Shown here: positions 2,715 through 41,735 of the stretch, in pieces
How positions within the stretch are numbered: position 1 is the first letter of the stretch
Layout of the letters: the number at the start of each line of letters is the position of its first letter
Origin: Takakia lepidozioides
Lineage: Eukaryota; Plantae; Bryophyta
Length of the DNA stretch: 64,000 nucleotides
Direction: 5' to 3'
Assembly (NCBI GenBank): GCA_030704615.1
Contig: CM060734.1
Span: forward strand, 48,298,001-48,362,000
The notes under the pieces: generated by a model
Databases searched by the model: none
What the model saw: the letters and a program-made list of their open reading frames with translations, nothing else
What the model was told of the DNA's origin: nothing
Translations under genes and position numbers: made by a program

Positions 2715-3112
2715 TCAGATGTCATGGGACAGCCACAATTGTATCACTGCTCTCTCCCATGACCGCCTAACAATCTTCAAGATGAACTTAGTGGCTGTGT
2801 AGAAGTCACCAGACACCCTAAGGTTGTGATGCGGAGAGGCGTTCCAGGGGAGGGTGCCCAAGGCCAAAAAATCAATGGACAGCCTCTGACTGTTGTGACA
2901 AAGAGAGAATTCTTTTATCTCCTCCTCCACATCACGCAAGAAGTGTCAGGCACATACCCAGCCTCCTTCATCTGGCCAGACAATCTCTTCAGCTCAGCAT
3001 GGATTTTGCAGTTGTTGACCTCAACATAGCACCACCCTGGCCTCTTTATCGCACGTCTGTCCTGCCTCATTTCTTACCTTTGCTCCGTTGTCCCACCTGC
3101 CAACTGCAGCAA
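2715..3112 (-). pseudogene. Frameshifted E2/E+/DYW deaminase remnant of the PPR gene
   Basis: Out-of-frame pieces on the minus strand: SNIFAAVGRWD, KRPGWCYVEVNN (PG box), KIHAELKRLSGQMKEAGYVPDT, CHNSQRL (HxE motif degraded) and NLRVSGDFYTATKFI (CxxC lost). Confidence 0.85.
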
Positions 3113-8279: not shown

Positions 8280-8376
8280 TGTCGTGCGCATACGTATCGC
8301 TACACAACTACATCGCTGTCCAAACTACACCACACATATATGGACAATAAAGTAGTCTGTCACAATCGCCCCCCTA
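8280..8376 (-). repeat. E1 3' terminal segment B (8280-8364) preceded by polypurine tract (8365-8376)
   Basis: Minus strand reads TAGGGGGGCGAT|TGTGAC...GCGATACGTATGCGCACGACA, homologous to E2 B1/B2. Confidence 0.85.
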
Positions 8377-8624
8377 GTTGGTGGATAGGTCCCTCTAACT
8401 CCAGATAGCTACAAGATGTAATAGCCACAGCCGTACTAAGTCCTCTATCACTGTCCCTATTGTACTCAAACTCTATAGACCAAGAGGCCAGGTACAAGAG
8501 TAGCCCCATCGTTAGTCGTCGTCTTGCAATCTGTGAACTTGAGCCAGGATCTCGTGTGTTCAAGGTCTCCTAATAGCTTGGTCTTGCATTTCTTGTTAGC
8601 TTTCCATGGTTGTATCCACTCCCA

Positions 8625-11600
8625 CTATCCAATGTAATGCGGACATAATCAATCCCCATCAGGAACCATCTGAAGAGGTGGAGTCAAACATCCCATATGC
8701 CAACCTCTAGAGCATCGATCACACACCAGCATGGTGGCTGCCCCTCTAGCAGACCCACACAACATGCACCTCAAACTTGCAGGTACCACTGCTAAGTTTG
8801 GGTCAATCCTACCATCGACATTCGGAAGGTGACATGGCGCACAATTACGCACATGGTCCTTCCAAGTTATGCCATCCCGACCCTCCAAGATCAAGACGCC
8901 TGAAGGCAATACCTCTCGAACCCTCAAAATAACACATCATGCAGTCACATCCAAGGTCGTAGGAGCAGTCTGCTGTAGATAAATATAGTCACCAGGGTTA
9001 AATCTCCGGATCCCAGGACGATAGCCCCCACCTCGTATGGTAGCATACCTCAACGTATCACGATGTTGTGCAATGGCAAGATTCTCGAAAGCCATGGGAA
9101 TTACTTTCTTGAACAACTCTGCACGTTGATCACATGCACGTGCCCACACATCCGGATCATCAAGGTTAAGAACTGTAGCAATTTCTCTACGAATGGATGT
9201 AGGCAAATCCGGCTCTCGGCCAAAGAGAAGAAAGTATGGTGAGAAGGAGGCAAGTGATGTTTGCTTGCTGAACCTGTAGCCCATGACTAACCAGGGTAAC
9301 TGAAGGTCCCAATCTCCTAGGTGTCCCTTCTGCAAGCCATACTTGCGCAAACCCCTCTTTACTGTCTGAACAACCCTCTCTGCCAAGCCATCGGCCTCAG
9401 GATGATCCCGAGAAGTGGTGCGGTGGTCTATCAAGGCCTTGTCACACAAAGCCTGAAACTCCCCCAAGAACTCTCTCCTTTGGTCCGTGAGTACCTCAGC
9501 TGGAGCACAAGTACACAATCCAAAAATGCATACGCATCTCCCTCACTAGCCTTATCAGGCAATGGAGCCAACTCGATCCACTTGGAGAAGTGCTCCACCA
9601 TCACCAATACGTACTTGTTGTGGCGCATGGTCAGTGGCAATGGCCCTGCGAAGTCAAGACTCCACTTGTAGCCCAATCCCATGATCGGAAGAGGGTGCAA
9701 TTGTGGAGTAGGGGCGTTGAATGAAGCACGCACCCTGTCACACACCATGCACCTAGCCACAAATTGTTGCACCTCTGTGTGCATACCACGCCACCAATAT
9801 TGCCCCTACAGTAGACTATGAGTGCGTCGCATCCCAAAATGCCCCAACTCCTCATGGGCATGCCGCACTAACCGTGCCCGCTGTGTTGGATGAGGCACAA
9901 TCCCCACTCGACCATCCTCCCACACTCGGAGTAGGTGTGTCCCCTCCCACTTGAACCTCTTGGCTCGTTGTAGGATCCGATCCCTCTCCTTGGCAGTCAA
10001 AGTGGCTGTCGTGTCTCCAGTGCGGAGGTAGTCCAACACATCTGAATCCTCATGTATATCTTTGGCGCCACCTTGCTCATTGCTGGCCTCAGGGTCCTCA
10101 GACACTTGATCTACAGTCATCCCTATTACAGGTCTAACCTTGCCTTCTGTTGCCAAGATACACAGAAATGCAGATGCATGCCATCCGGGCACCATCTCCT
10201 CGTCCGTCTCACCATGTTACCGAGCTCCAGTGTCATCCTGCTGGCTCGTGCATGGATTGTGACTCAACCCATCTGCATCCCGATTGACAAACCCGGTCGA
10301 TGCACAACCTAAAAGTCATACTCTTGAAGGATGAGTGCCTACCGTGCAAGCTTCCCCGTAAGCTTGTCTGACTCCATCAACCACTTGAGTGGTTGGTGAT
10401 CCGTGACAAGGGTGAAGAGATTGTCGTATAGATAGCACCTGAAGTGTGCCACGGCCCACACTACAGCTAAGCATTCTCCCTCATATGAGCTATACTTAGA
10501 CTCTGCAGCGTTGTTCGAGCGGCTAGCATAAGCCACTACAAACTCTCTTCCCTCATCATCCACCTGTGTGAGCACCACTCCAAGCCCTAGCATGCTCCAA
10601 TCTGTATGCAACTGAAAAGAACGCCCCCTGATAGGTCGTATCAAGATGGGCGCCGAGGTCAACCTCGCCTTGAGCTCTTGAAAAGCTTGTTCTTGCTCAT
10701 CTTCCCACTGCCACTCCTGGTCCACCTTGGTCAGTTTGGTTAGAGCCTTTGCAATGGCACTAAATCCCTTAACAAACCGTCTATAATAGTTTGCTAACCC
10801 CATGAAAGCTTGAACTCGGCTCACATCCGTGGGGCGTGGAATCTGTGCAATGGACTCTACCTTAGTCTGCTGTACCCCCAATCCTCCAGAATATATCATG
10901 TGACCCAGATACTCAATTTGGTTGTGGAAAAACTTGCACTTCCCCGGATGCAACTTCAATCCGTGCGCCCTTGAGCGCTCAAATACCACCTAAAGGTGTC
11001 TCTCATGCTCCTCCACCGTAGCACTAAAGATGATGATGTCATCTATGTAGCACCGAGCAAACTCCATGACTCTCTGAAACTCTGCAGGAGCGTTCTTAAG
11101 CCCAAATCGTAAGAACTGCCACTGGTATAGGCAATCCTTCCCGTGCTCATTGATCGCCCAGAATGCCGTCTTCTGCTTATCCGCCTCCTTGATCGGCAAC
11201 TAGTGATATCTGGATCGTAAATCCAAAGTGCTAAAGACCTTGGCATGCCCAATGGCATCAAAGATCTCCTCTGGTGCCGGCATGGCATACCTATCGGACT
11301 TGGTCTGATGATTTACAGACCGGTAATCACCGCACATACGTCTCTCCGTCCAATTGCCATAGACATCCTTCTTGGCTGGCATCACTGTGGCTGAAGCATA
11401 CATTCCCCCAGATAGCTCCACCAAACCAGCCTCCCAAAGGTCCTGAGTTCTTATCTGAATTAAGGACCTCTCCATGTCACTGTATCTATAGGGTCTCCGA
11501 AAGATTGGCGTGTCAGTAGCCAATTCAATGCGAATCTCTTGACCCTTCAGTGCTCCTAAGTCTTTCAAACTGAAGGCAAAGCAGTTCGTGTAAGCCCTCA

Positions 11601-11727
11601 AGAACCGCCGTATACGTCGTCTTTCCCCTCCGGTGACTATAGGTCCAACATCAGGCTCTCAGTTGTCCTCCGTGACTGCAACCTTGAGTCCAGCAGGCTT
11701 AGAGATAAAAGACGCGTCCCGTGGTTG
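8625..11727 (-). pseudogene. E1 pol: reverse transcriptase-RNase H-integrase-PHD finger (multiple stops)
   Basis: RMCGDYR, FSTLDLRS, YIDDIIIFS (RT); LHTDWS...ECLAVVWAV...TDH (RH); HHCC (HEELGH...CMVC), SLDF...TDQ...DGLAER (IN); CMLC...CDRCSRGWHMGCLTPPL (PHD). Confidence 0.93.
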
Positions 11728-14700
11728 CTATGCTGCAACCTCTTGAGCAGTGACCACTGCCTCCTCTGTCAGTGACAATGTCTCATCCTGCCCCAGCATC
11801 CCATTCTTGAGGACCTCCTCAACCCGAGAAAAATTCCCAACCTGATCCATCACCGCCGCCTTGGCTGCCAACTCCTTCTGAACCTCGAGCACCTCCCACG
11901 TGTGCCATGGATGCAGCCTGCACCTCGTGGTCCTCACCTGTTCGTCCCCACTCGCTGCTTGTACCGTCTCGGTAGGCAGGGAGACCATCAAGGGAAGTGT
12001 ACTCCGTAATTTGCGTTGCTCAGCCATAGCCAAGCTGATAATCTAGGTCAAGCAATTGAGATCCATTGCTTGCCCCAACACCTGACGACGTGATGCCTCA
12101 GAAAGAGATGGCACCGCCATGGTACCAGTGGTAAAACCTATCGCCCGCTCGCGCTCGTCAGCATTGGGCTCCACTAATTGCTGCAACTGGCTATCCTACA
12201 AGAGGCCAGGTCCACCATCGCGGAAAGCATGAGATCCTGGAAAGCTGAGTAGTGTAGGCAATGCGGCTCGTGGGTGACCCACCTTATTGACCACTGCCAA
12301 AGGTGATCGGTCATTGTGTCTCACACGCTGAGACTGTCTCCCTATGTCCAAAATGCTATCCACCATCAGGTGTGGTGGCCGCTGCACCTCATCAAATGCA
12401 CGCTTAAGCAGTGCAAGTGACATCAAGTTGGTCCACCATAGTCGTGGGCGATGAGCCCGTGATCCCACTGCAGCTGCGTCCAGCAACACTGCTAACCCAA
12501 GCCAAGACCGCACTTGATGCACACTGGCCATCACCTTGGCCCGATAATCACCCATCAATGGCTTATTCTCCAAAATATATGCCGGAGAGTCTGTCTGCTG
12601 AAGCTGTAAATAACGTAGGACCCTCAACATCTCTCAAAACATGCGTGACCTTGAGTCTTGTAACCCATTGCCATGCCCGGCTGATGAATGCCCTTGGCAG
12701 GGCCAACCTGCCACTACCAAATGAATAGGGTCAACCCGCTCCAAATCATGCGCCCCCAGCAAATAGATGTCTGTTGGCAATGCTTGTTGGTATCCACAAA
12801 CTGCAGACACTGGCAACAAATCAGGGTACTGCTGCACCAACTGAGCAACATGGCACAGTGAGACGCGTCGTGCAGTCTCATCCCTCTCCACATACAGGTA
12901 ACGTCGAACTCGTACACCTGCCTGCAGCACTGTAGCCAATCCAGTGCTGATCCCGCCAAACAAGTCCAGAAGGCATATGCCTTCATCCGGGCACTACCAC
13001 ACAAGAGGTGTGGTGTCCAACGGCGACAACTGAGATGGTCCTGGTGCAATCACCGCACTCTCCTCCTCTCCTGACGGTACGAAGGCCTCTACCCAGGCTT
13101 GTTGCACCCGTCTATCAGCAGCCTGCTGCAAATGCTTGTTCGTACCCCACAATGGAGTGTGAGCAACCATGGCAGACAACTCCGCCGTACCATGCATGTC
13201 ATCCTGCTCTGCTAGAGGTGGCACATCCTCTGCATGGGCATTGCCCTCCAGCAACTCTCCAGGCCAACTAACTGCAGCTGTGAAGGCTGCTAGTGTTGGC
13301 ATCTTGCCCCGCTGGGCAGCAGCAACACCCCCAATGAATGTCACAGGGAGCTGTACACGACGACCATCCCCTGACTGCCATCCAGGCCTGTAGGATGCTG
13401 ACTCCTCCCAAAAATCCAGGGTGAAGCCCATGAGATATAACACTGCCCCACCAACGAGGACATTGTAAGAGACCACATCTGTCACAATGGCCTTGGCTCG
13501 CATCACTGAGCCATCTATAGGATGATCCGGCTGTAGTCTAATGACCAACTCACGCCGTGTCATGCCCCGAGCCTGCTCTGATCCTCCCATAGATGTCTGT
13601 ATCTGGAAAGAACAAGGCTCCATGTCCGCCTCTATGAGACCCAAACCTGCAATAGCAACTCTGCCCAACATCAATGGCTGAGCTCCCGAGTCCAACAAGA
13701 CCCGCAGTGGCCGGTACCTCTTCCTGTCGGTCCACTCAAAGAGAAAATGTCATCCTGGTTGTCTAACAAGACAACTCCAGGTATCACCATGGCACGCTCA
13801 AAGGCTGGCCTAGCTGGCAGCTCCGTCAACCTGGCAGCTGCAGCTTGCCATGGCGCAGCCATGGCAGTCTTGACCCTCAAATCCGAGGATCCCTCTGCCA
13901 CTACACCCTCCACTAACTCCACAGAAGATGAAGTGACATCCCCACTCTCGTAGAGTGTTGCTGCTAGTCTGAACACTGCAGCTAGTCTTACCCCCGGCGT
14001 CGCAATCATGGTTGCCGAGAACAGTGGGGCTTGATACACAAAGGTGGCTGCCCCCATCAACACACTGGCTGCACTAGCCTTGGCAGCAGGTGTCAGTGCT
14101 GCACGTGTAGCTCTCCTCAATGGTACAATAACGGCCTCTGTATCTGTCGGACAAGAACTAGGTGCCATGGATGTCGTCGACACTGTCTCCCCCCAAGATG
14201 AATGATTGAGGCAACCTAGCTTGACGGCTTGCCTCCCCACGCTGTGGATCTAACTCCACCTCTGCACATCGTGGCTCAGGAACTCGTGCTGCTCCTCGAG
14301 TGACGGCTGCAGCATACTCCACCTGCACTAGTGGTAGTGTTGCCCCACACATAAATCCCATGCCTCCCATGTCTCCTCCGTCAGGATGACGCTGCTGAGG
14401 AGGAACATGAGGTGGACCCTCAAGTCTTGGAGCTGGTACCACCTGAGCTGTGGCCATGGCAGCAAGCCTTTGCTCTAGTTGCTGAAGCCGGTTGGCCATG
14501 CCTTGGTCAACGCCGTGACCTCCACGTCCTTGGCCATATTGTGCTTGCCCTTGTCTGCACCTCGTGCCTGAGCACCTCGTCCTCGCTGAGGTGCTCCACC
14601 ACGCCTTCGGCCACCACTGTTCCATTGGAACTGGAATCGCCGCAACTCAGGGTGCAAGTCATAACACTGGGCATCTCCATGCCCATACTTGCCACAATGC

Positions 14701-15930
14701 CCACACTGCAACTGTGCAAGCTATGCTTGTGCCGGCCCTTTGCTACTTTCTGGGCAATCTTTCTTGATATGGGGTCCTCCACATGTCCAACATACCACCC
14801 CTGGTTGCTGTTGGCCCGCAAAAGAAGCTACTGGCCTTTGCACCTGAGGTCCCCTGTAAGCTCCATGGAATTTGGGTTGGGAAACCTTGCCCCCCTGACC
14901 ACGCTGTTGGGCAGTCCCTTGTGCTTGTTGGCTGGCAGCTGCACCTCGTGCAGGCATGTCTTTGCCAAATCCAATGGTAACAACTCGCTCCTCCACCATG
15001 TTGAGCTCAATCTGCTCAGCCAGCAGAAACACATCTGCTAATGTGGGTTGGGCTGCTTGTAATAGGGTTGCATCCCGCACCCTTCTCCTGAGCTCATTGT
15101 CCAAAATTCCATACGAGAACTGGATTGTCTGAGCTTCAGTATCCCCCTGGGTCACACTTATCAAGCGGCTCATACGAGTGTAGGCCTCTCGCAGGCTCTC
15201 ACTGGATTTGCCCTGGAAGTCTTGCAAACTTCGCAGCTTCTTTGTCCGTACACCTTGGTAGTTCCTCCGCAACTCCTGGAAAAACTCCACCACCGGGTTG
15301 AATCTAGGCACATGTGTTGTAGTTGTGGTAGGAGGAGTAGTAACACCTTTTGAACTGGTACCACCTGCAGAAGTACCGACACTACTTGTTCCACTACTAG
15401 TGCTGGCAGTGGGAGATATTGGTGCTGATGCAGCTACTGGTCGCGTCGTGCCTCAAGTAATAGAGACGTAGTTAGGTGACCAATATATCCTCCACTCCTC
15501 AATCTCTGCTTCATGTCCTCGCCTGAACTCATGGTAATCGTCCATAGGCGGGCCTTCCAAATGCTGGAACAGTCCCTTCCACGCCATGAATGGGGTGAAC
15601 AGCTGTGGATTGCGCATCTGCTGCAAATCACACCAGCTGTCAAACTCCTGGATAAAGTCATCCAGCTCGATTGTGCCCATAGCTCCAGAGTACCTACGAG
15701 GCCCCTTAGTAGCTCCATACATCTCCTCCATGTCGTCCCACAACAATGGCGAATGAAACTGCACACCTATTGATGAAGCCTCCGAGTCTGTGTCTTACTC
15801 TGCACTAGTTGAGGGTGGAGGTGAAGGTGGTCTGAAACGAACACCTCGTCTGGTGAACCCACTCTCACTGCTACTGCCTGTAGCCGTACTCCCCTCAAAA
15901 CCCTTGGGTAACTCCGTGACGACACTCACA
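11728..15930 (-). pseudogene. E1 ORF1: Gag (zinc knuckles)-aspartic protease-DNMT3-like cytosine methyltransferase
   Basis: ELDDFIQEFDSWC (Gag N-terminus), CWTCGGPH and CGHCGKYGHGDAQC, LLDSGAQ (protease), then MTase motifs. Protease, MTase and RT fragments lie in one frame from 13698 to 10339. The start is approximate. Confidence 0.88.
12045..12980 (-). pseudogene. C5-cytosine DNA methyltransferase domain (DNMT3-like) in E1
   Basis: Motif I LLDLFGGISTG, II YVERDE, IV LVVAGWPCQ, GLQDSRSRMF, VI YILEN, VIII SRAHRPRLWWTN, IX ERERAIGF, X RRQVLGQAMD. Confidence 0.9.
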
Positions 15931-16057
15931 ACCCGCACCTCCCCCACGTGACACTATAAGGCTTTAGTACTAATTCTAATAGTGACACGGGTGAGCACCT
16001 GTTGCGGATTAAGGGTCATATCCCAGTGGCTAAGGGCACCTGCACCTGCATCCACCG

Positions 16058-16385
16058 TGTCAAGTTATTTTTACCACTAGTGTGAAACTAGCTAGGAAAT
16101 AGCTAGCTTTTACATATTGACATTTGGGATTGGCCCAAATGTCAATCCAGGGGTCAAGGCAGATTTAGGCCCTGGAGTGGTTATCTTCACGGCAAGCGCG
16201 GGAGGCTCATATTTCTCGAGTTGAGCCTCACCGCGCCTAGCTATGGCGCCGTAGTGTGGATTCCCCATGGCGTGGGGTGCATTTGGCTTGACTTGTATTT
16301 GAGTGATGAGGTTATATATGCATGAGTTTATGCTTCAGCTTTGTGAGCTCGCATGAGCTTGCGCTTGTATTCTTCTTCTTTATCA
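16058..16385 (+). repeat. E2 segment A1 (328 bp, TG...CA)
   Basis: Near-identical to 26534-26860. Confidence 0.92.
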
Positions 16386-16401
16386 CTCGAGAAAGATGAG
16401 C
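16385..16401 (+). promoter_or_regulatory. Putative self-priming primer-binding site of E2
   Basis: ACTCGAGAAAGATGAGC is the exact reverse complement of GCTCATCTTTCTCGAGT at 26680-26696 (one mismatch to 16205-16221). There is no TGG tRNA-type PBS. Confidence 0.7.
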
Positions 16402-16804
16402 TCGTATCTGTGAGTGCCAGATACGAGTTAGTTGTAGCACTTGTGGTTTTTGCTTGAGAATGAGAGAAACCAGGTTGTTATGCAAGGAGCACCGTGGAGC
16501 TCTTGGCGAAGCGAAAGGGCTGATTTGGCTTGGGGCAAATCAGTGCACTTTGTTGAGTATGTGGAGATTGGGTTTCAATCTCGAGCTTCAGCAGTGAGAG
16601 GGCTCTTGTCATGGGCTGGAACAGGAGCTAAGAGGGGCCGCAAGACCATGGAATGTGCACCTAGGGTTTCAGAGCTTGGAAGAAGAGCTCTTGCACCACA
16701 AGAGGAGTGTCTTGTGGCTGTAAATGTAAGCCTTAGGGTTTCAAGAGCTTGGCAAGGGCTATGGAGTGCTTAGTCTTGTCTTAGAGAGCATCAAGGAGCT
16801 AAGG

Positions 16805-17250
16805 AGCCAAGATAGGGGGCTGATACCTCTTGTGTGAAGAGGTTGCATGTGTGGAGCATGTATTCAGCTCATTGAAGCTTCCATCTTCAAGCTTGGAGGG
16901 CAAGCAAGGAAGAGGGAAGGGCTGACTTCCCTTATGTGAGAGCAATGCATGTGTGAAGCATGCTTTCAGCCTGTTGAAGGCTTGTACTTTCAGGTTTGGG
17001 AGTGCAAGAAAGAAAGGAAGGGGCTGGTTTCCCTGTAGGGCATGTGTGGAGCATGCTTCCAGCCCGTTGAAGCGTGTATTGTCAGGTTGGTGGGTGCAAG
17101 AAAGAAAGCAAAGGGGCTGATTCTCTGGTGGTGAGATTGGGGCATGTGTGGAGCATGCCTTCACTCTATTGGGCTTTTGTTTTCAAGCTTTAGAGAACTA
17201 GAAGAGAAGGTAAGGGGCTGATCTGCTCTTATGTGACAGTCCGACACTTG
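16805..17250 (+). repeat. ~100-bp tandem repeat (4-5 degenerate copies) in the E2 leader
   Basis: Recurring AGGGGCTG...GCATGTGTGGAGCATG...TTCAGC units near 16815, 16918, 17019, 17112 and 17213. Confidence 0.8.
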
Positions 17251-17667
17251 TAGAGCGTTCTGTTCTAAGTTGGGGTTTCAACCTCAAGCCTAGATATAGA
17301 GCATGGCTCTTGAAGTGGCAGGTGTGAGGGGGCTGGAATAGGCTCTAAGACAGATGCTATGGCCAAGGGAAACGCTTGAATGAGTGCTCACAAGGGCTGG
17401 AAACCAGCAAGGCTTGGTTGTTTGCCATTGAATTAGTGGCGTGTTTGGGGAGAGTCTAAGTGAGAAAGAAGGCTTGGTTTGTGGCAACCATCTTCCTCAT
17501 GCTTAGGGCTACTATTGGTGTGTGTGGGAGCCGAAAAGAGCAAGAAATACCTTGCTGATTTTTTCACAGCCGCCATAGCTCGGTGCAAAGAAGCCTAGAG
17601 TCCAAGAGACACAAACCTAGCTTGGCGTGACTAAACTCCTTGGAGAAATGGCTAAACTGTCATAAGT

Positions 17668-18310
17668 GGCCTGTGGGGATGTGTGACGGCCTGTGAGGGC
17701 CTGTGACAGGCTGTGCCCTCTGGCCTGTGGGGCTGTGACGGGCTGTGTGGAAGGTTGTTACAGGCCGTGACAGGCTGTGGCTAGCTGTGATAGGCTGTGA
17801 AGGCTGTTTGTGACAGGTTGTGCATGTGGCATGTGGGGGCTGTGACGGGCTGTGAGGGGCTGTGACAGGTTGTGGCCTTTGGGGCTGTGTGACCCTGTGA
17901 CCTGTGTAGGGCTGTGACAGGCTATGCCATGTGGAATGTGGGGTTGTGACGGGCTTGTGATGGGCTATGACAAGTGTTGGCCCTGTGGCTTGTGGGCGGC
18001 AGTGGCGGCTGTGTGATAGGCTGTGGCCTTTGTTCTCTGACCCCTGTGGACTTGTGACAGGCTGTGACGGGCTGTGAGGGGTTGTGACAGGCTATGGCCT
18101 TTGGGGCTATGACCCCTGTGACCTTTGTAGGGCTGTGACAGGCTGTGTCAGGCTGTGCCATGTGGTCTGTGGGGCTGTGACGGGCTGTGAGGGCTGTGAC
18201 AAGCTGTGGCCTGTGTGGGGCTGTGACGGCTGTGACCAGTGAGCTGTGTGGGCCTGTGCTGGTCTGTGGTGGCCCGTGTTGACCTGTGGACGGCCTGTGC
18301 TGACTGTGGA
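17668..18310 (+). repeat. GGCTGTGA-based ~10-bp degenerate minisatellite in the E2 leader
   Basis: Dozens of GGCTGTGAC(A/G)-like units. Confidence 0.85.
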
Positions 18311-18967
18311 GGCACTGGTGGACTACCTAAGGACTGGCATGTGGTCTTGAAGGTCGAATTTTGAAGCTCGTGGAGGGCGGTTTGAGGAGTATCTTCATGA
18401 TATTCCATGGTCATGCAAGTGAGGGAAGAGATGAGAGGAAGAGTGTTGGGATGAGGGCATGCTGGGGTTAGGCATTGCTTTAGCTTCTCTTCCTCGTAGT
18501 TTCCACCCTCTCATTAGGCCAAGACCTTTCCGTAGGTGGAGGCAAGAGTCAGTCCGGGTTTGGGCTGGGGTGTCCTTGCAGGACAACACCAGGAGTTGTT
18601 TTTGGTGTGGGGGAGTTGTCGTTCTGATTTCTTGTGTTTGGATCCCCTCCATACCTGCATGCTTGACTGTGCGCCATGCTAGTTTTGTGTGGCGCTTGTT
18701 TTTATAGGTGATTGGTCCGGATTTGATCACCGGCCAGTCCTAGAGCATGCTGTCGATGGTGAGGCTGGGATGATGACCAGCCAGACCATCATTGTTCTCT
18801 GTGTGGTGAGGTTGGAGGTGATGACCAGCCAACCATAGAGTGCTTGCGGTGGATGCAGGTACAGGTGTAGGCTATGTTAGGAACTTAGTATTCCAAACCA
18901 TAAGCCGCAACAGGTTCTCTACCCGGTTACCTTGTGGAGAGGGGGTTAGGGACATGTTCATGACCGG

Positions 18968-21900
18968 TTGAGTGTCAACACGGAGGTGCCACTAGTTGCT
19001 GGGGACAGTGCCGGTTCGAGCACTAGCGATACTAGTGGGTACACGAGACGAGGTGTGCGGTTTAGGCCACCTTCACCTCCTGTGTCTTCTACGGAAGGTT
19101 CTGATTCGGATTGTGAATCAGGAGACTCATACCGGCGGTGCAAGTTGTTTCCTTGCCATTGTTGTGGGACACAATGGAGGATGTATGGAGCTACCAAGGG
19201 GCCACGAAGGTACTCTGGGGCGGTGGGCACCATCGAGTTGGATGATTTTATCCAAGAGTTTGATAGTTGGTGTGATTTGCAGCAAATGCGCAATCCACAA
19301 CTATTTACGCCTTTCATGGCATGGAAGGGGCTGTTTCAGCACCTTGAGGGGCCGCCTATGGATGATTACCATGAGTTCAGGCGGGGGCATGAGGTTGAGA
19401 TCGAGGAGTGGAGGATGTACTGGTCACCCGACTATGTCTCCATCACTAGGGGCACTAGAGCCACGAGGGCAGTGGCTACACCTGCCGCTGCACCGGCAGC
19501 TTCAGCAAGCAGGGACTAGTGGACTGGTGGTACAGTAGCTACGACGTCCACCCAAGCCACTACCGCACCAGCACCAGTACCGTGCCTGCCTTCAACCCTG
19601 TTGTGGAGTTCTTCGAAGAGTTGAGAGGGAACTACCAAGGGGTGAGGACAGAGAAGTTGCGGAGCTTGCAAGAGTTCCAACGGAAGCCTACGAGAGCTTG
19701 AGGGAGGCTTTCACTCGCATGAGGCGCTTGATAAATGTAACCCAAGGGGTTACGGAAGCTCAGGCAGTCCAATTCTGGTATGGGATATTGGACAAGGAGC
19801 TGAGGAGAAGGGTGCGGGATGCAACTCTCCTACAAGCGGCCCAACCCACCTTAGCAAATGTGTTTTTGCTGGCAGAGCGGATAGAGCTCAACATGGTGGA
19901 GGAACGAGTGGTCATGGGGATTTGCTAAGGAGACACCACGGGGTAGTGGTGCTCCTAGCCAACCACTACCTCAACGTGCTCAAGGCAACAAGGGGGCTCA
20001 GGTGAAGCTCAGGGAAGGGCAGAGAGGACCTCAGATGCAGGGGTCTCTCCCTTCATTTGCAGGCCAACAACGGGCGGATGTGGTGTGCTGGACATGTGGA
20101 GGACCCCATGTCAAGAAGGATTGTCCAGAGGGAGGCAAAGGGCCGGCATGCACAGCCTGCACAGTTGCAGTGTGGGCATTGTGGCAAGCACGGGCATGGA
20201 GAGGCCCAGTGTTATGGTTTGCATCCTGAGTTGCGCCCAGGCCAGTTCCAAGGGAACAATGGTGGGGGGGCGAGGGGGAGCAGCCCAAAGAGGACGAGGT
20301 GGCCAGGCACAGGCCAAGGGCAAGCTCAACATGGCCAAGGACGCGGAGGTCAGGGTGTTGACCAAGGCATGGCCAACCGGCTTCAGCAGCTAGAGCAGAG
20401 GCTCGCTGCCATGGCTACAGCTCAGGTGGTACCGGCTCTAAGGCCGGATGGTCCACCTCCTGCTCCTGAGGGAGGAGATATGGGAGGCATGGGATTCATG
20501 TGTGGAGCAGCACTACCACTAGTGCAGGTGGAGTCTGCTGCAGCCGTGACTCGAGGAGCAGCACGAGTTCCTGAGCCACGAGGTGCAGAGGTGGAGTTGG
20601 ATCCACAGCGTGGGGAGGCAAGCCGTCAGGCTAGGCTTCCTCAGTCATTCACATTGGCGGAGACAGTGTCGACGCCATCCATGGCACCTAGTTCTCGCCC
20701 GACTGTTACCGAGGCGGAGGTTACTATGCCATTGGGGAGAGCTACACGGGTAGCACCACTACCTAGTGTTGCCAAGGCTACGGCAGCTAGTGTGCTGCTA
20801 GGAGCGGCCACATCTGTGTGCCAGGCTCCATTGTTCTCGGCTACCATGATTGCGACGCGGGGGTAAGACCAGCTGAGGTGTTCAGGCTGGCAGCTACACT
20901 CTGTGAGAGTGGGGAGGTTACTTCATCTTCTGCGGAGATAGTGGGAGAGTGCCGGAGGGATCCTCGGATTTGAGGGTCAAGACTGCCACGGCGGCGCCAT
21001 GGCAAGCTGCAGCTGCCAGGTTGATGGAGCTGCCAGCTAGGCCAGCCATTGAGCGCGCCATGGTGACACCTGGAGTTGTCATGTTAGACAACCAGGATGG
21101 CATTTTCTGTTTGAGTGGACCGGCAGGCAAGAGGTACCGGCCACTGCGGGTCTTGTTGGACTCGGGAGCTCAGCCATTGATGCTGGGCAGAGCTGCTATT
21201 GCAGGCTTGGGCCTCACGGAGGCGGATATGGAGCCTTGTCCTTTCCAGATACAGACGTCTCTGGGAGGATCGGAGCAGGCTCGGGCATGACACGGCGTGA
21301 GTTGGCTATCAGACTACGGCCGGATCACCCTACAGATGGCTCAGTGATGCGAGCCAAGGCCATTGTGACAGACGCGGTCTCATACGATGTCCTGGTTGGT
21401 GGGGCAGTGTTGTACCATGGGCTTCACCCTGGATTTTTGGGAGGAGTCAGCTTCCTATAGGCCTGGATGGCAGTCAGGGGAGGGCCGGCGTGTGCAGCTC
21501 CCTGTGACGTTCATAGGAGGAGTTGCGGTTGCCAGCGGCAAGATGCGACACTAGCAGCATTCACAGCGGCAGTGAGTTGGCCTAGAGAGTTGCTTGAGGG
21601 CAACGCTCATTCAGAGGATGTGCCACCTCCGGGAGAGCAGGATGACATGTATGGTATGGCGGAGTTGCCTACCATGGTTGCTCAGACTCCATTGTGGGGC
21701 ACGAGCAAGGATTTGCAGCGGGATGCTGATCGACGGGTGCAACAAGCCTGGGTGGAGGCTTTTGTACCGTCAGGAGAGGAGGAGAGTGCGGGGATTGCAC
21801 CAGGACCACCTCAGTTGTCTCCATTGGACACCACACCTATTGTGTGGCAGTATCCGGATGAAGGCATTTGTCTTCTGGACTTGTTTGGCGGGATCAGCAC

Positions 21901-23009
21901 CGGATTGGCTGCTGTTACAGGCAGGTGTACGAGTTCGGCGTTACCTGTATGTGGAGAGGGATGAGACTGCACGACGTTTCACTTCGCCATGTTGCTCAGT
22001 TGGTGCAGCGGTACCCTGAGTTGTTGTCGGTGTCTGCATTCGTGGATATCAGCAGGCCTTGCCAGCAGACATTTCGTTGCTGGGGGCGCAGGATTTGGAG
22101 CGGGTTGGCTCCATTGATCTGGTAGTTGCAGGTTGGCCCTGCCAAGGGCATTCAACTGTATCTCCAGCATACATCTTGGAGAATGTGCCACTGATGGGCG
22201 ATTCTCGGGCCAGGGTGATGGCCAGTGTGCATCAAGTCCGGTCGTGGCTTGGGTCAGCAGTGTTGCTAGATGCAGCTACAGTGGGGTCACGGGCTCATCG
22301 TCCACTATGGTGGACTAACTTGATGCCACCGCACTGCTCAAGCGTGCATTTGATGGGGGTGCAGCGGCCAGCACATCTCACAGTGGATAACATTCTGGAC
22401 ACAGGGAGGCAGTCTCAGCGTGTGAGACACGATGACCGTTCGCCTTTGGCAGTGGTCAACAAGGGTGGGTCAACCACGAGCAGCATTACCTACACTGCTC
22501 AGCTTCCCAGGATCGCATGCTTTCCGGGATAGTGGACCTGGCCTCCTGTGGGATGCTCAGTTGCAGTTAGTGGAGCCTAATGCTGACGAGCGTGAGCGGC
22601 AATGGGTTTTACCACTGGTACCACGGCGGTGTCGTCTCTTTCTGAGGCATCACGTCGTCAGTGTTGGGGCAAGCAATGGATCTCAATTGCTTGACCTGGA
22701 TTATCAGCTTGGCTATGGCTGAGCAACGCAGAGTGCGGAGTACACTTCCCTCGATGGTCTCTCTGCCTACCGAGACGGTACAGGCAGTGAGTGGGGGCGA
22801 GCATGTGAGGACCACGGGGTGCATGCATCCATGGCACACGTGGGAGGTGCTCGAGGTTCAGAGGGAGTTGGCAGCCAAGGCGGCTGTGATGGATGAGGTT
22901 GGGGATTTTTCTCGGGTGAGGAAGTCCTGAGGATGAGATGATGGGGCAGGATGAGGCCTTGTCATTGACTGAGCAGGTAGGGAGTACTGCTCAAGAGGTT
23001 GCAACATAG
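18968..23009 (+). pseudogene. E2 ORF1: Gag-protease-DNMT3-like (frameshifted, MTase internally deleted)
   Basis: Same motifs as E1. MTase at about 21865-22700. WPCQGHS joins directly to TVSPAYILENV, so about 30 codons are missing. Confidence 0.88.
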
Positions 23010-26000
23010 CAACCACGGACGCGTCCTCTACCTCTAAGCCCACTGGACTTAAGGTTGCAGTTACGGAGGACAATTGGGAGCCTGACATTGGACCCATTGT
23101 CACCGGAGGAGAGAGACGACGTATACGGCGGTTCCTGAGGGCTTACAGGAATTGCTTTGCCTTCCTTTTTCAGTTTGCTGCACAGACCCCGATTCGGCCC
23201 TGACACGCCAATCTTTCGGAGACCCTATAGATACAGTGACATGGAGAGGTTTGATTCAGATGAGGACTCAAGATCTCTGGGAGGCAGGTTTGGTGGAGCT
23301 CTCTGGTGGAGAGTATGCTTCAGCCACAGTGATGCCAGCCAAGAAGGATGTCTATGGCAATTGGACGGAGAGACGTATGTGCGGTGATTACCGGCCTGTA
23401 AATCGTCAGACCAAGTCCGATAAGTATGCCATGCCAACACCAGAGGAGATCTTTGATGCCATCGGGCATGCTAAGGTCTTTAGCACTTTGGATTTACGAT
23501 CCGGATATCACCAGTTGCCAATCAAGGAGGCGGACAAGCAGAAGACGCATTCTGGGGATCAATGAGCACGGCAAGGATTGCCTATATCAGTGGCGGTTCT
23601 TACCATTTGGGCTTAAGAATGCTCCTGCAGAGTTTCAGAGAGTCATGGATAGGATTCTAGCAGGGGTGGACTTTGCTCGGTGCTACATAGATGACATCAT
23701 CATCTTTAGTGTTATGGAGGAGCATGAGAGACACCTTCAGGTGGTATTGGAGCGCTTGAGAGCGCACGGATTGAAGTTGCATCCGGGGAAGTGCAAGTTT
23801 TCCACAACCAGATTGAGTATCTGGGTCACATGATATATCCTGGAGGATTGGGGGTACAGCAGACTAAGGTAGGCCATTGCACAAATTCCACGCCCCACGG
23901 ATGTGAGCCGAGTTCGAGCTTTCATGGGGTTGGCAAACTATTATAGACGGTTTGTCAAGGGATTTAGTACCATTGCAAAGGCTCTAACCAAGCTGACCAA
24001 GGTGGACCAGGAGTGGCAGTGGGAAGATGAGCAGGAACGAGCTTTTCAAGAGCTCAAGGCGAGGTTGACCTCGGCGCCTATCCTGAGACGACCTATCAGG
24101 GGGCGTCCCTTTCAGCTGCATACGGATTGGAGCATGCTGGGGCTTGGAGCGGTGCTCACACAGGTGGATGATGAGGGAAGAGAGTTCGTAGTGGCTTATG
24201 CTAGCCGCTCGAACAACGCTGCAGAGGCTAAGTACAGCTCATATGGGAGAGTGCTTAGCTGCAGTGTGGGCCGTGGCACACTTCAGGTGCTATCTATACG
24301 GCAATCTTTTCACCCTTGTCACGGATCACCAGCCACTCAAGTGGTTGATGGAGTCAGACAAGCTTACGGGGAAGCTTGCACGGTGGGCACTATACTCCAG
24401 GAGTATGACTTTCAGGTTGTGCATCGACCGGGTTTGGTCAATCGGGATGCGGATGGATTGAGTCGCAATCCATGCATGAGCCAGCAGGATGACACTGGAG
24501 CTCGGTGGCATGGTGAGACGGACGAGGAGATGGTGCCGGGATGGCACGCATCTGCATTTTTGTGTATCTTGGCATCGGGAGGTCAGGTTGGACCTACAAC
24601 AGGGATGACTGTAGACGGAGTGTCTGAGGACCCTGAGGCTAGTGATGAGCTAGGTGGTGCCAAAGATATACATGAGGATTCGCTGTGTTGGACTACCTCC
24701 GCACGGGAGACACGGCAGCCATTGTGACTGCCAGGGAGAGGGATCGGATCCTGCAACGAGCCAAGAGGTTCAAGTGGGAGGGGACACCTACTTCGAGTGT
24801 GGGAGGATGGGGTGAGGATTGTGCCTCACCCCACACAACGGTTAGTGCGGCATGCCCATGAGGAGTTGGGCATTTTGGAGTGCGACGCACTCACAGTTTA
24901 CTGCAGGGGCAGTATTGGTGGCGTGGTATGCATACAGAGGTGCAACAGTTTGTGGCTAGGTGCATGGTGTGTGACAGGGTGCGTGCTTCATTCAACGCCC
25001 CTACACCACAGTTGCATCTTTACCAATCATGGGATTGGGCTACAGGTGGAGTCTTGACTTCGCAGGACCGTTGCCACTGACTATGCGCCACCACAGATAT
25101 GTGTTGGTGATGGTGGAGCACTTCTCCAAGTGGATTGAGTTGGTTCCATTGCCTGACAAGGCTAGTGAGGGGGCTGCGTATGCATTCTTGGATCGTGTGC
25201 TTAGCCGATTTGGTGCTCCAGCTGAGGTACTCACGGACCAAGGAGAGAGTTCTTGGGGGAGTTTCAGGCTTTTGTGTGATAAAGCCTTGATAGACCACCG
25301 CACCACTTCTCGGGATCATCCTGAGGCCGATGGCTTGGCAGAGAGAGTTGTTCAGACGGTGAAGAGGGGTTTGCGCAAGTATGGCTTACAGAAGGGACAC
25401 CTAGGAGATTGGGATCTTCAGGTTCCTTGGTTAGCCATGGGCTACAGGTTCAGCAAACAAGCATCACTTGCCTCCTTCTCACCATATTTCCTTCTCTTTG
25501 GCCGAGAGCCGGATTTGCCTGCAGCCATTCGTAGGGACACTGCTCAAGTCCTTAACCTTGACGATCCGGACGTGTGGGTACGTGCATGTGATCAGCGTGC
25601 AGAGTTGTTCAAGAAAGTCATGCCCATGGCTTTTGAGAACCTTGCCATTGCACAGCACCGTGATACGTTGAGGTATGCCACTATACGTGGTGGAGGATAT
25701 CGTCCTGGGGTTCGGAGGTTTAGCCCTGGTGACTATGTTTATTTGCAGCAGACTGCTCCTACGACTCTGGATGTTACTGCAGGGCGTGTTATTCTGAGGG
25801 TTCGAGAGGTGTTGCCCTCAGGGGTCCTGATCTTGGAGGGTCGGGATGGCATGACTTGGAAGGACCATGTGCGTAATTGTGCGCCATGTCACCTTCCCAA
25901 TGTCGATGGCAGAGTTGACCCAAACTTGGCAGTGGTACCTGCAGGTTTGAGGTGCATGCTCTGTGGGTCTGCCAAAGGGGCAACCACCATGCTGGTGTTG

Positions 26001-26096
26001 ATCGATGCTCAAGGGGTTGGCATATGGGATGCTTGACACCACCTCTTGAGAAGGTTCCTGACGGAGATTGGTTGTGTCCACACTGCTTGGGATAGT
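23010..26096 (+). pseudogene. E2 pol: RT-RNase H-integrase-PHD (frameshifted)
   Basis: RRMCGDYRP, YIDDIIIFS, LHTDWS, integrase core in ORF 25029-26036, PHD CMLC...CSRGWHMGC...WLCPHC. Confidence 0.92.
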
Positions 26097-26344
26097 GGCA
26101 GTGGACATGACTGGAGGCAGCTAACAAGACATGGGAGGCCAAGCTCATAGGAGTCAATACATGAGATCCCAAGCTCAAGTTCACAGGTTGCAAAGACGAT
26201 GACTAACGATGGGGCAACTCTTGCACCCGGCCTCTTGATCTATCGAGTTTGAGTGTAGTAGGGATAGTGGTGGAGGACTTAGTGAGGCTATGGTCACTAT
26301 CACATCTTGTGGCTACCTGGACTTAGAGGGACCTAAGCACCAGC

Positions 26345-26860
26345 TAGGGGGCGATTGTGTGGACTAGTGACTGCCATAGTGGGCAGCATAGTGGCAGCCT
26401 AGTGACTGACTAGTTGTAGCCTAGTGGTTGGACTAGTGGTGGACTAGTGATATACTAGTGTGTGACGTGCACATGTTGTGTGTGGTTTTGGACAGCGATG
26501 TAGTTGTGTAGCGATATGTATGCGCACGACAGCTGTCAAGTTATTTTACCACTAGTGTGAAACTAGCTAGGAAATAGCTAGCTTTTACATATTGACATTT
26601 GGGATTGGCCCAAGTGTCAATCCAGGGGTCAAGGCAGATTTAGGCCCTGGAGTGGTTATCTTCACGGCAAGCGCGGGAGGCTCATCTTTCTCGAGTTGAG
26701 CCTCACCGCGCCTAGCTATGGCGCCGTAGTGTGGATTCCCCATGGCGTGGGGTGCACTTGGCTTGACTTATATTTGAGTGATGAGGTTATATATGCATGA
26801 GTTTATGCTTCAGCTTTGTGAGCTTGCATGAGCTTGTGCTTGTATTCTTTTTCTTTATCA
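26345..26860 (+). repeat. PPT (26345-26355) followed by the full LTR unit B1 (26356-26531)-GC-A2 (26534-26860)
   Basis: TAGGGGGCGAT|TGTGTGGAC...GCGCACGACA GC TGTCAAGTTA...TTTATCA; the unit is TG...CA and 505 bp long. Confidence 0.88.
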
Positions 26861-26861
26861 T

Positions 26862-27030
26862 TGTGTGGACTAGTGACTGCCATAGTGGGCAGCATAGTGG
26901 CAGCATAGTGGCAGCCTAGTGACTGACTAGTTGTACTAGTGGCTGGACTAGTGGTAGTGTGTGGCGTGCACATGTGTTGTGTGGTTTTGGACAGCGATGT
27001 AGTTGTGTAGCGATATGTATGCGCACGACA
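26862..27030 (+). repeat. E2 segment B2
   Basis: Second copy of B1, joined to A2 as ...TTTATCA-T-TGTGTGGAC. Confidence 0.9.
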
Positions 27031-27551
27031 ACCGCAAGAACTCATATGGTTGGCTGGTCATCAACCCAGCCTCACCATAGAAGAAACACTGGTGGTCTTG
27101 CTGGTCATCACTCCAGCCTTACCACCAACGGCATACTCTAAGATTGACCGGTGATAAAATCCAGCCTAATCCCTATGAAAGCAAGCGCCCACACAAAACC
27201 AACATGGCGCACAGTCAAGCATGCAGGTGTGGGGGAGATCCAAACATAAGAAACCAAAACATCAACACCCCCACACCAAAATCCCTCCACAGTGCTGCTC
27301 CTGCAGAATACCCCAGCCCAAAAACCCCGGACTGACTGGCCTCCACCAAGAGAGGCTTTGACAACTACAAGTACAAAGTAATGAAAATAGTAAAGAGAGG
27401 GAGGGAAAGAATAGAGGTCCGACCAAGCAAGATCTAATTCTGATCTATGCTATCAACTGCCAGACTTTTCTCAAAGTGCCTCGCTCTACATGATGGTAAG
27501 ATGTGGGAGGTATATCTATATCCAGAAACCTGCCACTAACCTTATCCCAAG

Positions 27552-32960: not shown

Positions 32961-34799
32961 ATGGCAGGGTTTCATCAGGCACCATTGTTTGAATCAGGCA
33001 CTTATGTCTGTCTCTTGCAGGAGTGCATCAAAATTAAGGATCTACAATCGGGAAGGAAAGTGCATGACCACATTATAAAGAGTGGATTCAATCCAAACAA
33101 CTGTCTACTCAACACCCTTGTCAACATGTATACGAAGTGTGGAAGAGTGGTCGATGCACGCCAAGTATTTGACAAAATGCCTAAACGAGATATGTTTACT
33201 TGGAATATAATGATAGCAGGATATGCAAAACAAGGGTGCGGTAGGGAGGCTTTTGAAATCTATGAGCAATTGAGGCAAGAACGGGCAATGCCTGACAAGG
33301 TCACATTCACCAGTGTTCTTCATGCGTGTGCCAGCCTAGGAGCCCTGGAAAAGGGCAAAGAAGTCCATGCTGACATTATCAAGGCGGGAATTGTGCCAGA
33401 TATCATGCTGGAGACTGCCCTTGCTGACATGTATGCAAAATGTGGGAGAATAAATGATGCATGTCGGTTGTTCAACAATATGGCTGCACAAGATGTTGTC
33501 TCATGGAATGCAATGATTGCAGGATATGCTCAGCAGGGTTGTGCTAGGGAGGCATTTGAGATGTATGAGCGAATGATATGGGAAGGGTTGACGCCCGACA
33601 AGGTCACATTCATTTGTGTTCTCAATGTCTGTACCAGCCTGGCAGTCCTTGAAAAGGGCATAGAGGTCCATGCTAACGTCATCCAAGCTAGAATTGCCCC
33701 AGATATCATTCTGGACACCGCTCTTGTCAACATGTATGCCAAATGTGGAAGCATGAAGGATGCATGTCAAGTATTCGACAATATGGCTAAACGGGATGTG
33801 GTATCATGGAGTGCCATGATCGCAGGATATGCTCAGCAGGGGCATGCTGGGGAGGCTTTGGCGACATACGAGCGAATGTTACAGGAATGTGTGACACCTG
33901 ATAGAGTTGCTTTCATTTGTGTTCTCAATGCATGTGCTAGCCAGGGAGCCCTGGCAAAGGGCAAAGAGATCCATGCTGAGATCAGCAAAGCCAGAATCGT
34001 TCCTGATATCATTCTGGAGACTGCCCTTGCTGACATGTATGCCAAATGTGGGAGCATGAAGGATGCACATCTAGTGTTCAACAGTATGGCTCAGCAAAAC
34101 GTGGTCTCATGGAACACAATGATTGGAGGATACATTCAGTATGGTTGTGGTGGGGAGGCTTTGGAGATGTATGAGCAAATGATACAGGAGGACATGACGC
34201 CTGACATGGTCACGTTCACTTCTGTTCTCAATGCTTGTGCCAGCCTGGCAGTCCTAGAAAAGGGCAGAGAGGTCCATGCTGACATCATCAGAGCTGGAAT
34301 TGCACCAGATGTTATTCTGGAGACTGCTCTTGCTGATATGTATGCCAAATGCGGGAGCATGAAGGATGGACGCCAAGTGTTTGACAGTATGACTCGACGA
34401 AATGTGGTCTCGTGGAGTGCAATGATTGGAGGATATGCTCAACATGGGTATGGTAGAGAGGCCCTGCAACTATTCGAACAAATGCAGCAGGAAGGTTTTA
34501 AGCCAGATGTTATCAGCTTTGCATGTGTTATGTCTGCGTGCAGCCATGTGGGCCTAGTGGATGAAGCCCGTCATTACTTGGATTGCATGAGCCGAGATCA
34601 TTGCCTCATTCCTACAGTGGAACATTTTGGCTGCATGGTGGACCTTCTTGGCCGTGCAGGGCAACTGACTGAGGCAGAGGACTTTATCAAGAATATGCCA
34701 ATCAAACCAGATTCTTTAGTTTGGGGGACTCTGCTGGGTGCCAGCCGAATCTACAGTGATGTGGAGGTAGCAGAACGAGCGGCAAAATGCCTTCTGTAG
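32961..34799 (+). CDS. PLS-class PPR protein, paralog of 3074-5188, stops in E1
   Basis: Intronless 612-aa ORF with five P motifs in PLS triplets and EHFGCMVDLLGRAG. Confidence 0.93.
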   Translation: MAGFHQAPLFESGTYVCLLQECIKIKDLQSGRKVHDHIIKSGFNPNNCLLNTLVNMYTKCGRVVDARQVFDKMPKRDMFTWNIMIAGYAKQGCGREAFEIYEQLRQERAMPDKVTFTSVLHACASLGALEKGKEVHADIIKAGIVPDIMLETALADMYAKCGRINDACRLFNNMAAQDVVSWNAMIAGYAQQGCAREAFEMYERMIWEGLTPDKVTFICVLNVCTSLAVLEKGIEVHANVIQARIAPDIILDTALVNMYAKCGSMKDACQVFDNMAKRDVVSWSAMIAGYAQQGHAGEALATYERMLQECVTPDRVAFICVLNACASQGALAKGKEIHAEISKARIVPDIILETALADMYAKCGSMKDAHLVFNSMAQQNVVSWNTMIGGYIQYGCGGEALEMYEQMIQEDMTPDMVTFTSVLNACASLAVLEKGREVHADIIRAGIAPDVILETALADMYAKCGSMKDGRQVFDSMTRRNVVSWSAMIGGYAQHGYGREALQLFEQMQQEGFKPDVISFACVMSACSHVGLVDEARHYLDCMSRDHCLIPTVEHFGCMVDLLGRAGQLTEAEDFIKNMPIKPDSLVWGTLLGASRIYSDVEVAERAAKCLL

Positions 34800-41734: not shown

Positions 41735-41735
41735 T

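Follow-up and report, generated by a model that had tools for sequence, protein, structure and literature searches.

A Ty3/gypsy retrotransposon lineage of bryophytes and streptophyte algae with insertion ends inside the long terminal repeat

Introduction

[quoted passage not shown] The locus described here raises the question of how an element can be inserted by ends that lie within its LTR. It is located in a 64,000-nucleotide stretch of the moss Takakia lepidozioides (GCA_030704615.1, contig CM060734.1, positions 48,298,001 to 48,362,000 of the forward strand; hereafter the window), which is plant-lineage nuclear DNA with a retrotransposon nest between two intact pentatricopeptide-repeat genes. 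One element of this nest, E2 (16058-27030, plus strand), reads ACCG/A1-genes-PPT-B1-GC-A2-B2/ACCG, where A and B are two sequence blocks, PPT is the polypurine tract and ACCG is the target site duplication (TSD). E2 is nested in E1, an older relative.

Relative to the usual LTR layout, the integrated form of these elements is circularly permuted, and this observation is confirmed as real and family-wide. We propose, with a probability of roughly 0.7, that E2 represents, in decayed form, a Ty3/gypsy lineage found in bryophytes and streptophyte algae, of the KnitGypsy-Dnmt3 kind, whose own integrase would cut an internal palindrome of a joined or looped cDNA.

Boundaries of E2 and E1

Reverse transcription and integration define different units in this element. 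The unit of reverse transcription is B-GC-A, with a conserved PPT directly before B and a self-priming primer binding site (PBS) directly after A, in agreement with the original prediction, which had taken B-GC-A as the functional LTR. Insertions never end at the tips of B-GC-A in any of the copies examined. They end at the palindrome between B and A, GACA/GC/TGTC, and the central GC is absent from the ends; this had been claimed for the two window copies and holds for E2, for E1 and for the relatives surveyed below. A-B was considered as the true LTR and rejected, because B invariably lies next to the PPT and A next to the self-priming PBS, and B is never found at a 5′ end.

The two ends of E2 and its TSD were also examined in contigs of public runs that were aligned to positions 26250-27110 (X1, carrying the same species label; X6, a plant metagenome; X12, RNA-labelled); the family is very highly repeated. 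In 44 X1, 2 X6 and 1 X12 contigs CTGCATCC is read directly before ACCGCAAG with a single ACCG. These contigs align from 27031 on and are preceded by CACCTGCATCC, which is uninterrupted E1-family sequence. They are thus paralogous empty sites, and they confirm both the boundaries of E2 and the 4-bp duplication. Short contigs from X1, X6 and X12 also bridge the B-GC-A or the A-B joint. No single read covers the whole of B-A-B, and the one raw RNA run aligned to this region, the single-cell run X15, gave no reads. The X12 contigs include pieces of flank plus A and of A-B, and contigs of this type cannot reveal the ends of a molecule.

The joint between A2 and B2 had been read as two blocks separated by a spacer "t". 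The same T follows the PPT in front of B1, so it is the first base of B, and A2/B2 is a flush fusion of the LTR tips as defined by reverse transcription. B1 and B2 are 87% identical with small indels.

E1 lies on the minus strand. It starts with GATG/TGTCAAG at 31227 and ends with CACGACA/GATG at 8280; it has one A, one short B and no A2-B2, which is the A...B structure bounded by a 4-bp TSD that had been assigned to it, GATG being present on both sides. According to the self-comparison of the window its interior occupies 8361-15863 and resumes at 27031-27347 and beyond, with E2 nested within. The A of E1 is only about 70% identical to the A of E2, so E1 belongs to a different subfamily.

Distribution of the layout

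The integrase open reading frame (ORF) has relatives in Calypogeia fissa (79-81% identity), Marchantia polymorpha (66-78%), Sphagnum fallax (60%) and Klebsormidium nitens (about 54%). Loci around related integrase genes were taken from genome assemblies and metagenome contigs, A and B were mapped in each, and loci with the same flanks were merged. Three loci stand outside the layout count, L001 (GCA_030144725.1), the Marchantia PHD-only gene model L004 and the Calypogeia longer-repeat cluster L087; L003 was too decayed for A to be located.

In Calypogeia, Sphagnum, Klebsormidium and moss-associated metagenomes, some 25 independent 3′ ends have the order PPT-B-GACA-NN-TGTC-A-B/flank. The spacer NN always has 2 nt and is GC, or else AC, GT or AT, the transition products expected from the decay of GC. 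B2 always ends with ...GACA, after which the flanks are unrelated. About 20 further 3′ ends read PPT-B-GACA/flank and do not have A2-B2. At the other side the picture is uniform: all 13 independent 5′ ends consist of flank/TGTC-A followed by the same kind of PBS. Among these 13 there was no canonical BA...BA copy and none with B before A. The mirror form, A-B-A-genes-B, was likewise absent from the 13 5′ ends, and its count among complete elements was 0 versus 6 of the form A-genes-B-GC-A-B (A..BAB). All five complete elements with a B-only 3′ end (A..B) have a plain A at the 5′ end.

Complete elements have ends of the TG...CA type, TGTC...GACA, and an exact 4-bp TSD was found in 9 of 11. For A..BAB elements the TSDs are ACCG (E2), AAGG (L017), CATA (L043), CTAA (L088, Calypogeia fissa) and ATCT (L090, Sphagnum fallax); for A..B elements they are GATG (E1), TACA (L018), ACTA (L042) and TGTG (L054). 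The rule that had been predicted for the family, TGTC...GACA ends with 4-bp TSDs and no BA...BA copies, thus describes the relatives as well, and for the ACCG of E2 the duplication is backed by the empty sites.

The A2/B2 joints are mostly flush, as would be expected if, as suggested for E2 beforehand, they were fused cDNA tips. The exceptions are L038 with an extra G, L011 with a 17-nt filler plus a PPT-derived CGA, and L069 with an extra AG. Judged from their sequences, the joints behave as joined free cDNA tips would.

In one Calypogeia fissa locus (L087; 11600-13400, 200-5600) a related integrase-PHD element is followed by repeats of 490-615 nt, five in 20 kb and more than 99% identical. 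Either the layout exists there with larger repeats, or several elements may be nested in a cluster.

Priming of reverse transcription

No tRNA-type PBS was found after A. Instead, the bases from the last nucleotide of A onwards are complementary to A position ~155-171, a site within the loop of a conserved GGCTCA/TGAGCC hairpin. The pairing extends over 10-17 nt and is kept in five diverged subfamilies by different sequences (CTCGAG, CTCTAAG, CTTTGAG, TTCTAGAA). In E2, TTTCTCGAGT pairs with ACTCGAGAAA, and the A2 copy pairs over 13 nt; in E1 the partners are TCTCTCGAGT and ACTCGAGAGA, in Calypogeia AGTTCTCTAAGT and ACTTAGAGAACT. Sphagnum has a 17-mer, AACATAGTTCTTTGAGT, and a third moss family has AGTTTTTCTAGAATT. 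In the two cases subjected to a shuffle test, none of 1000 shuffles reached the observed pairing length. The covariation of the two partners indicates self-priming of the Tf1 type, which has been predicted for plant Tcn1 elements by Neumann et al. 2019 (PMC6317226). By analogy with these elements the RNA would start inside A, so that U3 would comprise B-GC and the first ~150 nt of A, and the remainder of A would be R-U5.

Two loci, L020 (3242-3878) and L022 (1293-1929), contain a fossil in which PPT-B-GC-A-PBS is followed by an inverted A, running from ~164 to 1 and ending with ...CATGACA/flank. This looks like plus-strand strong-stop DNA whose PBS tail had folded back on the site in A, was extended, and was cut at the start of A. 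The inverted start of A would then have served as a ...GACA end, and the fossil lends support to the self-priming pairing.

Encoded proteins

The Pfam domains of E2 are arranged as protease (PR), reverse transcriptase (RT), RNase H (RH) and rve integrase (IN), i.e. in the gypsy order PR-RT-RH-IN. The near-intact relatives L002 and L006 encode a zf-CCHC Gag, PR, a C5 DNA methyltransferase (DNMT), RT, RH, an H2C2-rve integrase and a C-terminal PHD finger, and the proteins of the lineage are Gag-PR-DNMT and RT-RH-IN(DD35E)-PHD. The DNA_methylase match of L002 and L006 lies between protease and RT. None of the window copies gives a Pfam match to DNMT, which marks them as decayed; by tblastn, 21021-22673 of E2 and 13728-11995 of E1 are homologous to the PR-DNMT ORF of a relative. 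The DD35E triad (D16, D76, E111) is present in the window in ORF 41740-42825, which belongs to a duplicate copy.

The original prediction had seen only a DDE integrase in the window, and this extends to the intact members of the family: there was no Phage_integrase match, and hence no tyrosine recombinase, in the ORFs of E2 or in the near-intact relatives, whose ORFs fill the internal region.

In Marchantia polymorpha, Mp_7g09570 (L004) and several other gene models are annotated as host "PHD-type domain" proteins; they are integrase-PHD fragments of this retrotransposon.

Route of integration

The integrase site and the tips produced by reverse transcription are out of register in every copy examined, so some joined or looped form must be the normal substrate. 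In sequence, the palindrome is built like a retroviral circle junction (...CA-NN-TG...), and the integrases of prototype foamy virus (PFV) and HIV-1 cleave palindromic LTR-LTR junctions as tetramers, leaving processed ends (PMC1180852, PMC1905944). We therefore envisage that the DD35E integrase of the element would bind the palindrome as a symmetric pair of ends, nick after each CA and insert both new ends. The nicks would leave 2-nt GC overhangs that are removed during gap repair, which fits the missing GC together with the 4-bp duplication. A cut in a form with one LTR, either a circular reverse-transcription intermediate or a 1-LTR circle, would give A-genes-B as in E1. A cut in the completed PBS-side LTR, combined with joining of the reverse-transcription tips (the end of A and the start of B), would give A-genes-B-GC-A-B as in E2; no other form retains a full 3′ LTR and is able to make a replicable RNA.

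The two products could follow from the timing of the cut, provided that the integrase acts without delay once the palindrome has become double-stranded. Up to strand displacement, the intermediate would have a single LTR and yield A-genes-B. After plus-strand transfer the LTR on the PBS side would be completed within a few hundred nucleotides of synthesis, and the copy on the PPT side would remain a displaced single strand for as long as plus-strand synthesis has not passed through the whole interior. A cut on the PBS side in that interval, followed by tip joining, would lead to A-genes-B-A-B. The missing mirror forms suggest that cutting takes place at a stage when the PBS-side palindrome alone is double-stranded, and not on a finished symmetric circle. 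An origin of B2 by copying of read-through RNA was considered and rejected, because a PBS after A1 and strand transfer onto A2 would leave the sequence 3′ of A2 uncopied; the PPT-derived extra bases at a few A/B joints also contradict it.

Several points speak against this proposal. The mechanism is read from sequences, and the circular intermediate is something that we infer from them. A symmetric 2-LTR circle predicts mirror forms and none were seen, and the kinetic explanation given above for their absence is inference only. A..B copies could have arisen secondarily, by B1 x B2 deletion. The TSD is unmatched in the complete element L069, and in L016 only 3 of 4 bases match. The 5′ end of an insertion keeps only ~150 nt of the element upstream of the putative RNA start, which bears on where the promoter is placed. 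Finally, A..B copies are about as common as A..BAB copies, but this ratio of roughly 1:1 is soft since metagenome assemblers may collapse B-A-B into B, and from chromosome-scale assemblies the only A..B representatives are E1 and the decayed 3′ end of L003.

In the strongest alternative, transposition makes only A-genes-B-A-B, and A-genes-B is derived from it afterwards, as solo LTRs are from full elements, when B1 and B2 recombine unequally or the sequence between them is deleted. The two B copies are direct repeats only ~330-450 nt apart, a deletion between them would keep the TSD, and A-genes-B has no 3′ copy of R and so should not replicate. On the other hand, B is short (86-180 nt), and B-only and B-A-B 3′ ends nevertheless have similar frequencies. 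Recombination between the longer A1 and A2 should in turn yield solo A-B, of which there was none in the sequence examined, an observation of low statistical power. Moreover, the cut of a one-LTR intermediate at its single palindrome would yield A-genes-B directly. We regard secondary deletion as a serious contender, albeit with the odds somewhat against it.

A second alternative, close to what had originally been put forward, is that finished cDNA is ligated into closed circles and opened by the integrase at one internal palindrome, E1 stemming from a 1-LTR and E2 from a 2-LTR circle. In its favor, opening of a 2-LTR circle at one B/A palindrome would give exactly E2 and opening of a 1-LTR circle in the same way E1, the A2/B2 joints resemble circle junctions down to the rare PPT-derived insertions, and palindromes of this type are cleaved by the retroviral integrases cited above. 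But a 2-LTR circle has two identical palindromes, and the mirror form should be as common as A..BAB; the counts given above, 0 versus 6 complete elements, have P ~0.016 under 1:1, and the 13 5′ ends and the plain A of the five B-only elements agree with them. A deletion between A copies could turn mirror forms into A..B, but would need an extreme difference in rate to account for zero mirrors and is a minor possibility. Of the circle idea, the integrase site inside the LTR and the joined tips have stood; the simple circle model is incomplete, and we consider it unlikely as it was formulated.

It is very improbable that the element moves like DIRS, Ngaro and PAT elements, with a tyrosine recombinase acting in trans and the DDE integrase as a relic. 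The order A1...B1-A2-B2 is indeed that of tyrosine-recombinase retrotransposons (PMC5890265). Against this stand the exact 4-bp TSDs of 9 of the 11 complete elements, their TG...CA ends, and near-complete relatives that have an intact DD35E integrase ORF and no recombinase ORF. TSDs are not expected from tyrosine-recombinase elements. Misassembly, or a single rearrangement that befell a canonical element in the window, is practically negligible as an explanation, for which the extreme repetitiveness of the family and the lack of a single read across B1-A2-B2 could be adduced. The layout recurs with other flanks and TSDs in Klebsormidium nitens, in ~20 metagenome contigs and in the Calypogeia fissa and Sphagnum fallax assemblies, which are chromosome-scale, and contigs of independent runs bridge both joints.

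Our preferred reading remains cleavage of the internal palindrome by the element's own integrase on joined or looped cDNA. It is tempting to speculate that an entire lineage with a DDE integrase, from streptophyte algae to mosses and liverworts, integrates only via a palindrome inside the LTR of looped or circular cDNA, but for this wider claim the chances are, in our view, slightly less than even.

Relation to known elements

A repeat structure of this kind was thought to be undescribed, which is not the case. A DIRS-like repeat structure was recorded by de Mendoza et al. 2018 for the Klebsormidium nitens element KnitGypsy-Dnmt3, together with Gypsy-typical domains (PMC5890265, Fig. 4c legend), and in a full-text literature search no other paper naming KnitGypsy-Dnmt3 was found. 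That paper gives no TSDs, palindrome, priming mode, A..B form or mechanism; the layout itself is not new to the literature, and the self-priming site, the abundance of A..B and the missing mirror forms go beyond it. KnitGypsy-Dnmt3 has a Gypsy-type polyprotein with a DNMT3-like methyltransferase, and the K. nitens loci L005 and L089 read PPT-B-GACAGCTGTC-A-B. E2, in contrast, is a bryophyte element, and identity between its integrase and the K. nitens proteins is only ~54%.

With Ngaro and PAT elements of the DIRS order E2 shares the split direct repeats A1-genes-B1-A2-B2, which formally are a two-repeat circle opened at the B/A boundary. The lineage of E2 differs from them by its DDE integrase, the absence of a tyrosine recombinase, 4-bp TSDs, TG...CA ends and the gypsy order PR-RT-RH-IN. 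Compared with the DIRS/Ngaro/PAT group, then, the split repeats are found, whereas a tyrosine recombinase and insertion without TSD are not; compared with Ty3/gypsy, the domain order, DD35E with H2C2 zinc finger, and TSD with TG...CA ends are all found, whereas two identical terminal LTRs are not. The priming resembles that of Tf1/sushi elements (Tcn1), in which a PBS adjoining U5 is complementary to the element's own RNA and not to a tRNA, but Tf1-type elements integrate with two identical LTRs. The E2 lineage has a PHD finger where chromoviruses have a chromodomain.

A biochemical precedent is the cleavage of 2-LTR junctions by PFV and HIV-1, where a tetramer of a DDE integrase cuts a ...CA-NN-TG... 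palindrome to give 3′-processed ends (PMC1180852, PMC1905944). In retroviruses two LTR tips meet in the palindrome, and cleavage there is at most an accessory route; in the E2 lineage the palindrome is inside the LTR as defined by reverse transcription, and every insertion examined ends there. If the wider claim made above for the entire lineage is correct, this would be a natural case of the long-disputed route in which a circle junction is the substrate of integration, and the split-repeat layout of DIRS, Ngaro and PAT would be independent of a tyrosine recombinase. The layout also bears on the origin of split repeats in tyrosine-recombinase retrotransposons. Whether a DDE integrase uses a junction palindrome in vivo can now be approached in a plant lineage with tractable models. 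For annotation it follows that LTR finders that look for two matching terminal repeats misplace the boundaries or miss the A-genes-B form altogether.

Other features of the window

The features are compiled in Table 1. The 10-mer GACAGCTGTC at the B1/A2 boundary occurs only once in the window; the same 10-mer or transition-decayed versions of it are present in the relatives from Klebsormidium, Calypogeia, Sphagnum and metagenomes.

Table 1 Features of E2, E1 and the segmental duplicate in the window
Feature	Position	Strand	Basis or remark
E2, left TSD copy, ACCG	16054-16057	+	Junction sequence and paralogous empty sites with single ACCG
A1, left end of E2, starts TGTCAAG; probably 3′ part of U3 plus R-U5 of the LTR defined by reverse transcription	16058-16385	+	97.6% identical to A2
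Putative self-primer site TTTCTCGAGT within A1, loop of GGCTCA/TGAGCC hairpin	16212-16221	+	Complementary to 16385-16394
Self-priming-type PBS ACTCGAGAAAGATG, begins at last base of A1	16385-16398	+	Equivalent pairing in five diverged subfamilies
E2 leader, tandem array of 10-nt GGCTGTGACA-like units	17666-18313	+	
E2 protease and DNMT region, decayed	21021-22673	+	tblastn with PR-DNMT ORF of intact relative L006; weak protease match
E2 reverse transcriptase and RNase H, frameshifted	23054-24679	+	Pfam and tblastn
E2 DDE integrase (H2C2 zinc finger, rve core) and C-terminal PHD finger	24818-26086	+	Pfam and tblastn
PPT AGGGGGCGA, abuts B1 upstream	26346-26354	+	Conserved before B in ~50 related loci
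B1, probably 5′ part of U3, ends CACGACA	26355-26531 (start 26355/6)	+	
Palindrome GACA-GC-TGTC (GACAGCTGTC) at B1/A2 boundary, putative integrase att site	26528-26537	none	
A2	26534-26860	+	
B2, right end of E2, flush to end of A2, ends CACGACA	26861-27030 (start 26861/2)	+	Contigs bridge joint
E2, right TSD copy, ACCG	27031-27034	+	
E1, older relative of the same lineage, A-genes-PPT-B	8280-31227	-	Interrupted by E2
E1, A	31227-30877	-	
E1, self-priming PBS	30877-30868	-	
E1, PPT	8375-8366	-	
E1, B	8365-8280	-	
E1, TSD copies, GATG	31231-31228 and 8279-8276	-	
Inverted segmental duplicate of E1/E2 junction	41733-50023	-	Self-comparison, tblastn
Duplicate, A(1-183)	47131-46949	-	Joined to the E2-like coding part
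Duplicate, E2-like PR-DNMT, RT-RH, INT-PHD	46951-41733	-	
Duplicate, E1-like flank	47132-50023	-	

A further copy of A, at 47131-46949, should not be taken for a third insertion. More than 1 kb of upstream flank, including ACCG, is common to it and A1; it came with an inverted segmental duplicate and was not inserted independently. The duplicate is 97-98% identical over 12232-16241 versus 50023-46949, and 95.5% over 20948-26102 of E2 versus 46951-41733. It has a 4.7-kb internal deletion that removed the equivalent of 16241-20948 of E2, and everything 3′ of the integrase-PHD region is missing as well.

The leader of E2 contains ~50 degenerate tandem repeats of the 10-nt unit GGCTGTGACA, in the array listed in Table 1 and also at 16844-17163. 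Their core, GACAGGCTGT, is one base off the palindrome GACAGCTGTC.

The two intact pentatricopeptide-repeat genes that bracket the nest, at 3074-5188 (minus strand) and 32961-34799 (plus strand), are ~77% identical and in opposite orientation. An unrelated retrotransposon is represented by an integrase fragment at 59123-59893 (minus strand) with an SH3-like domain typical of copia-type elements.

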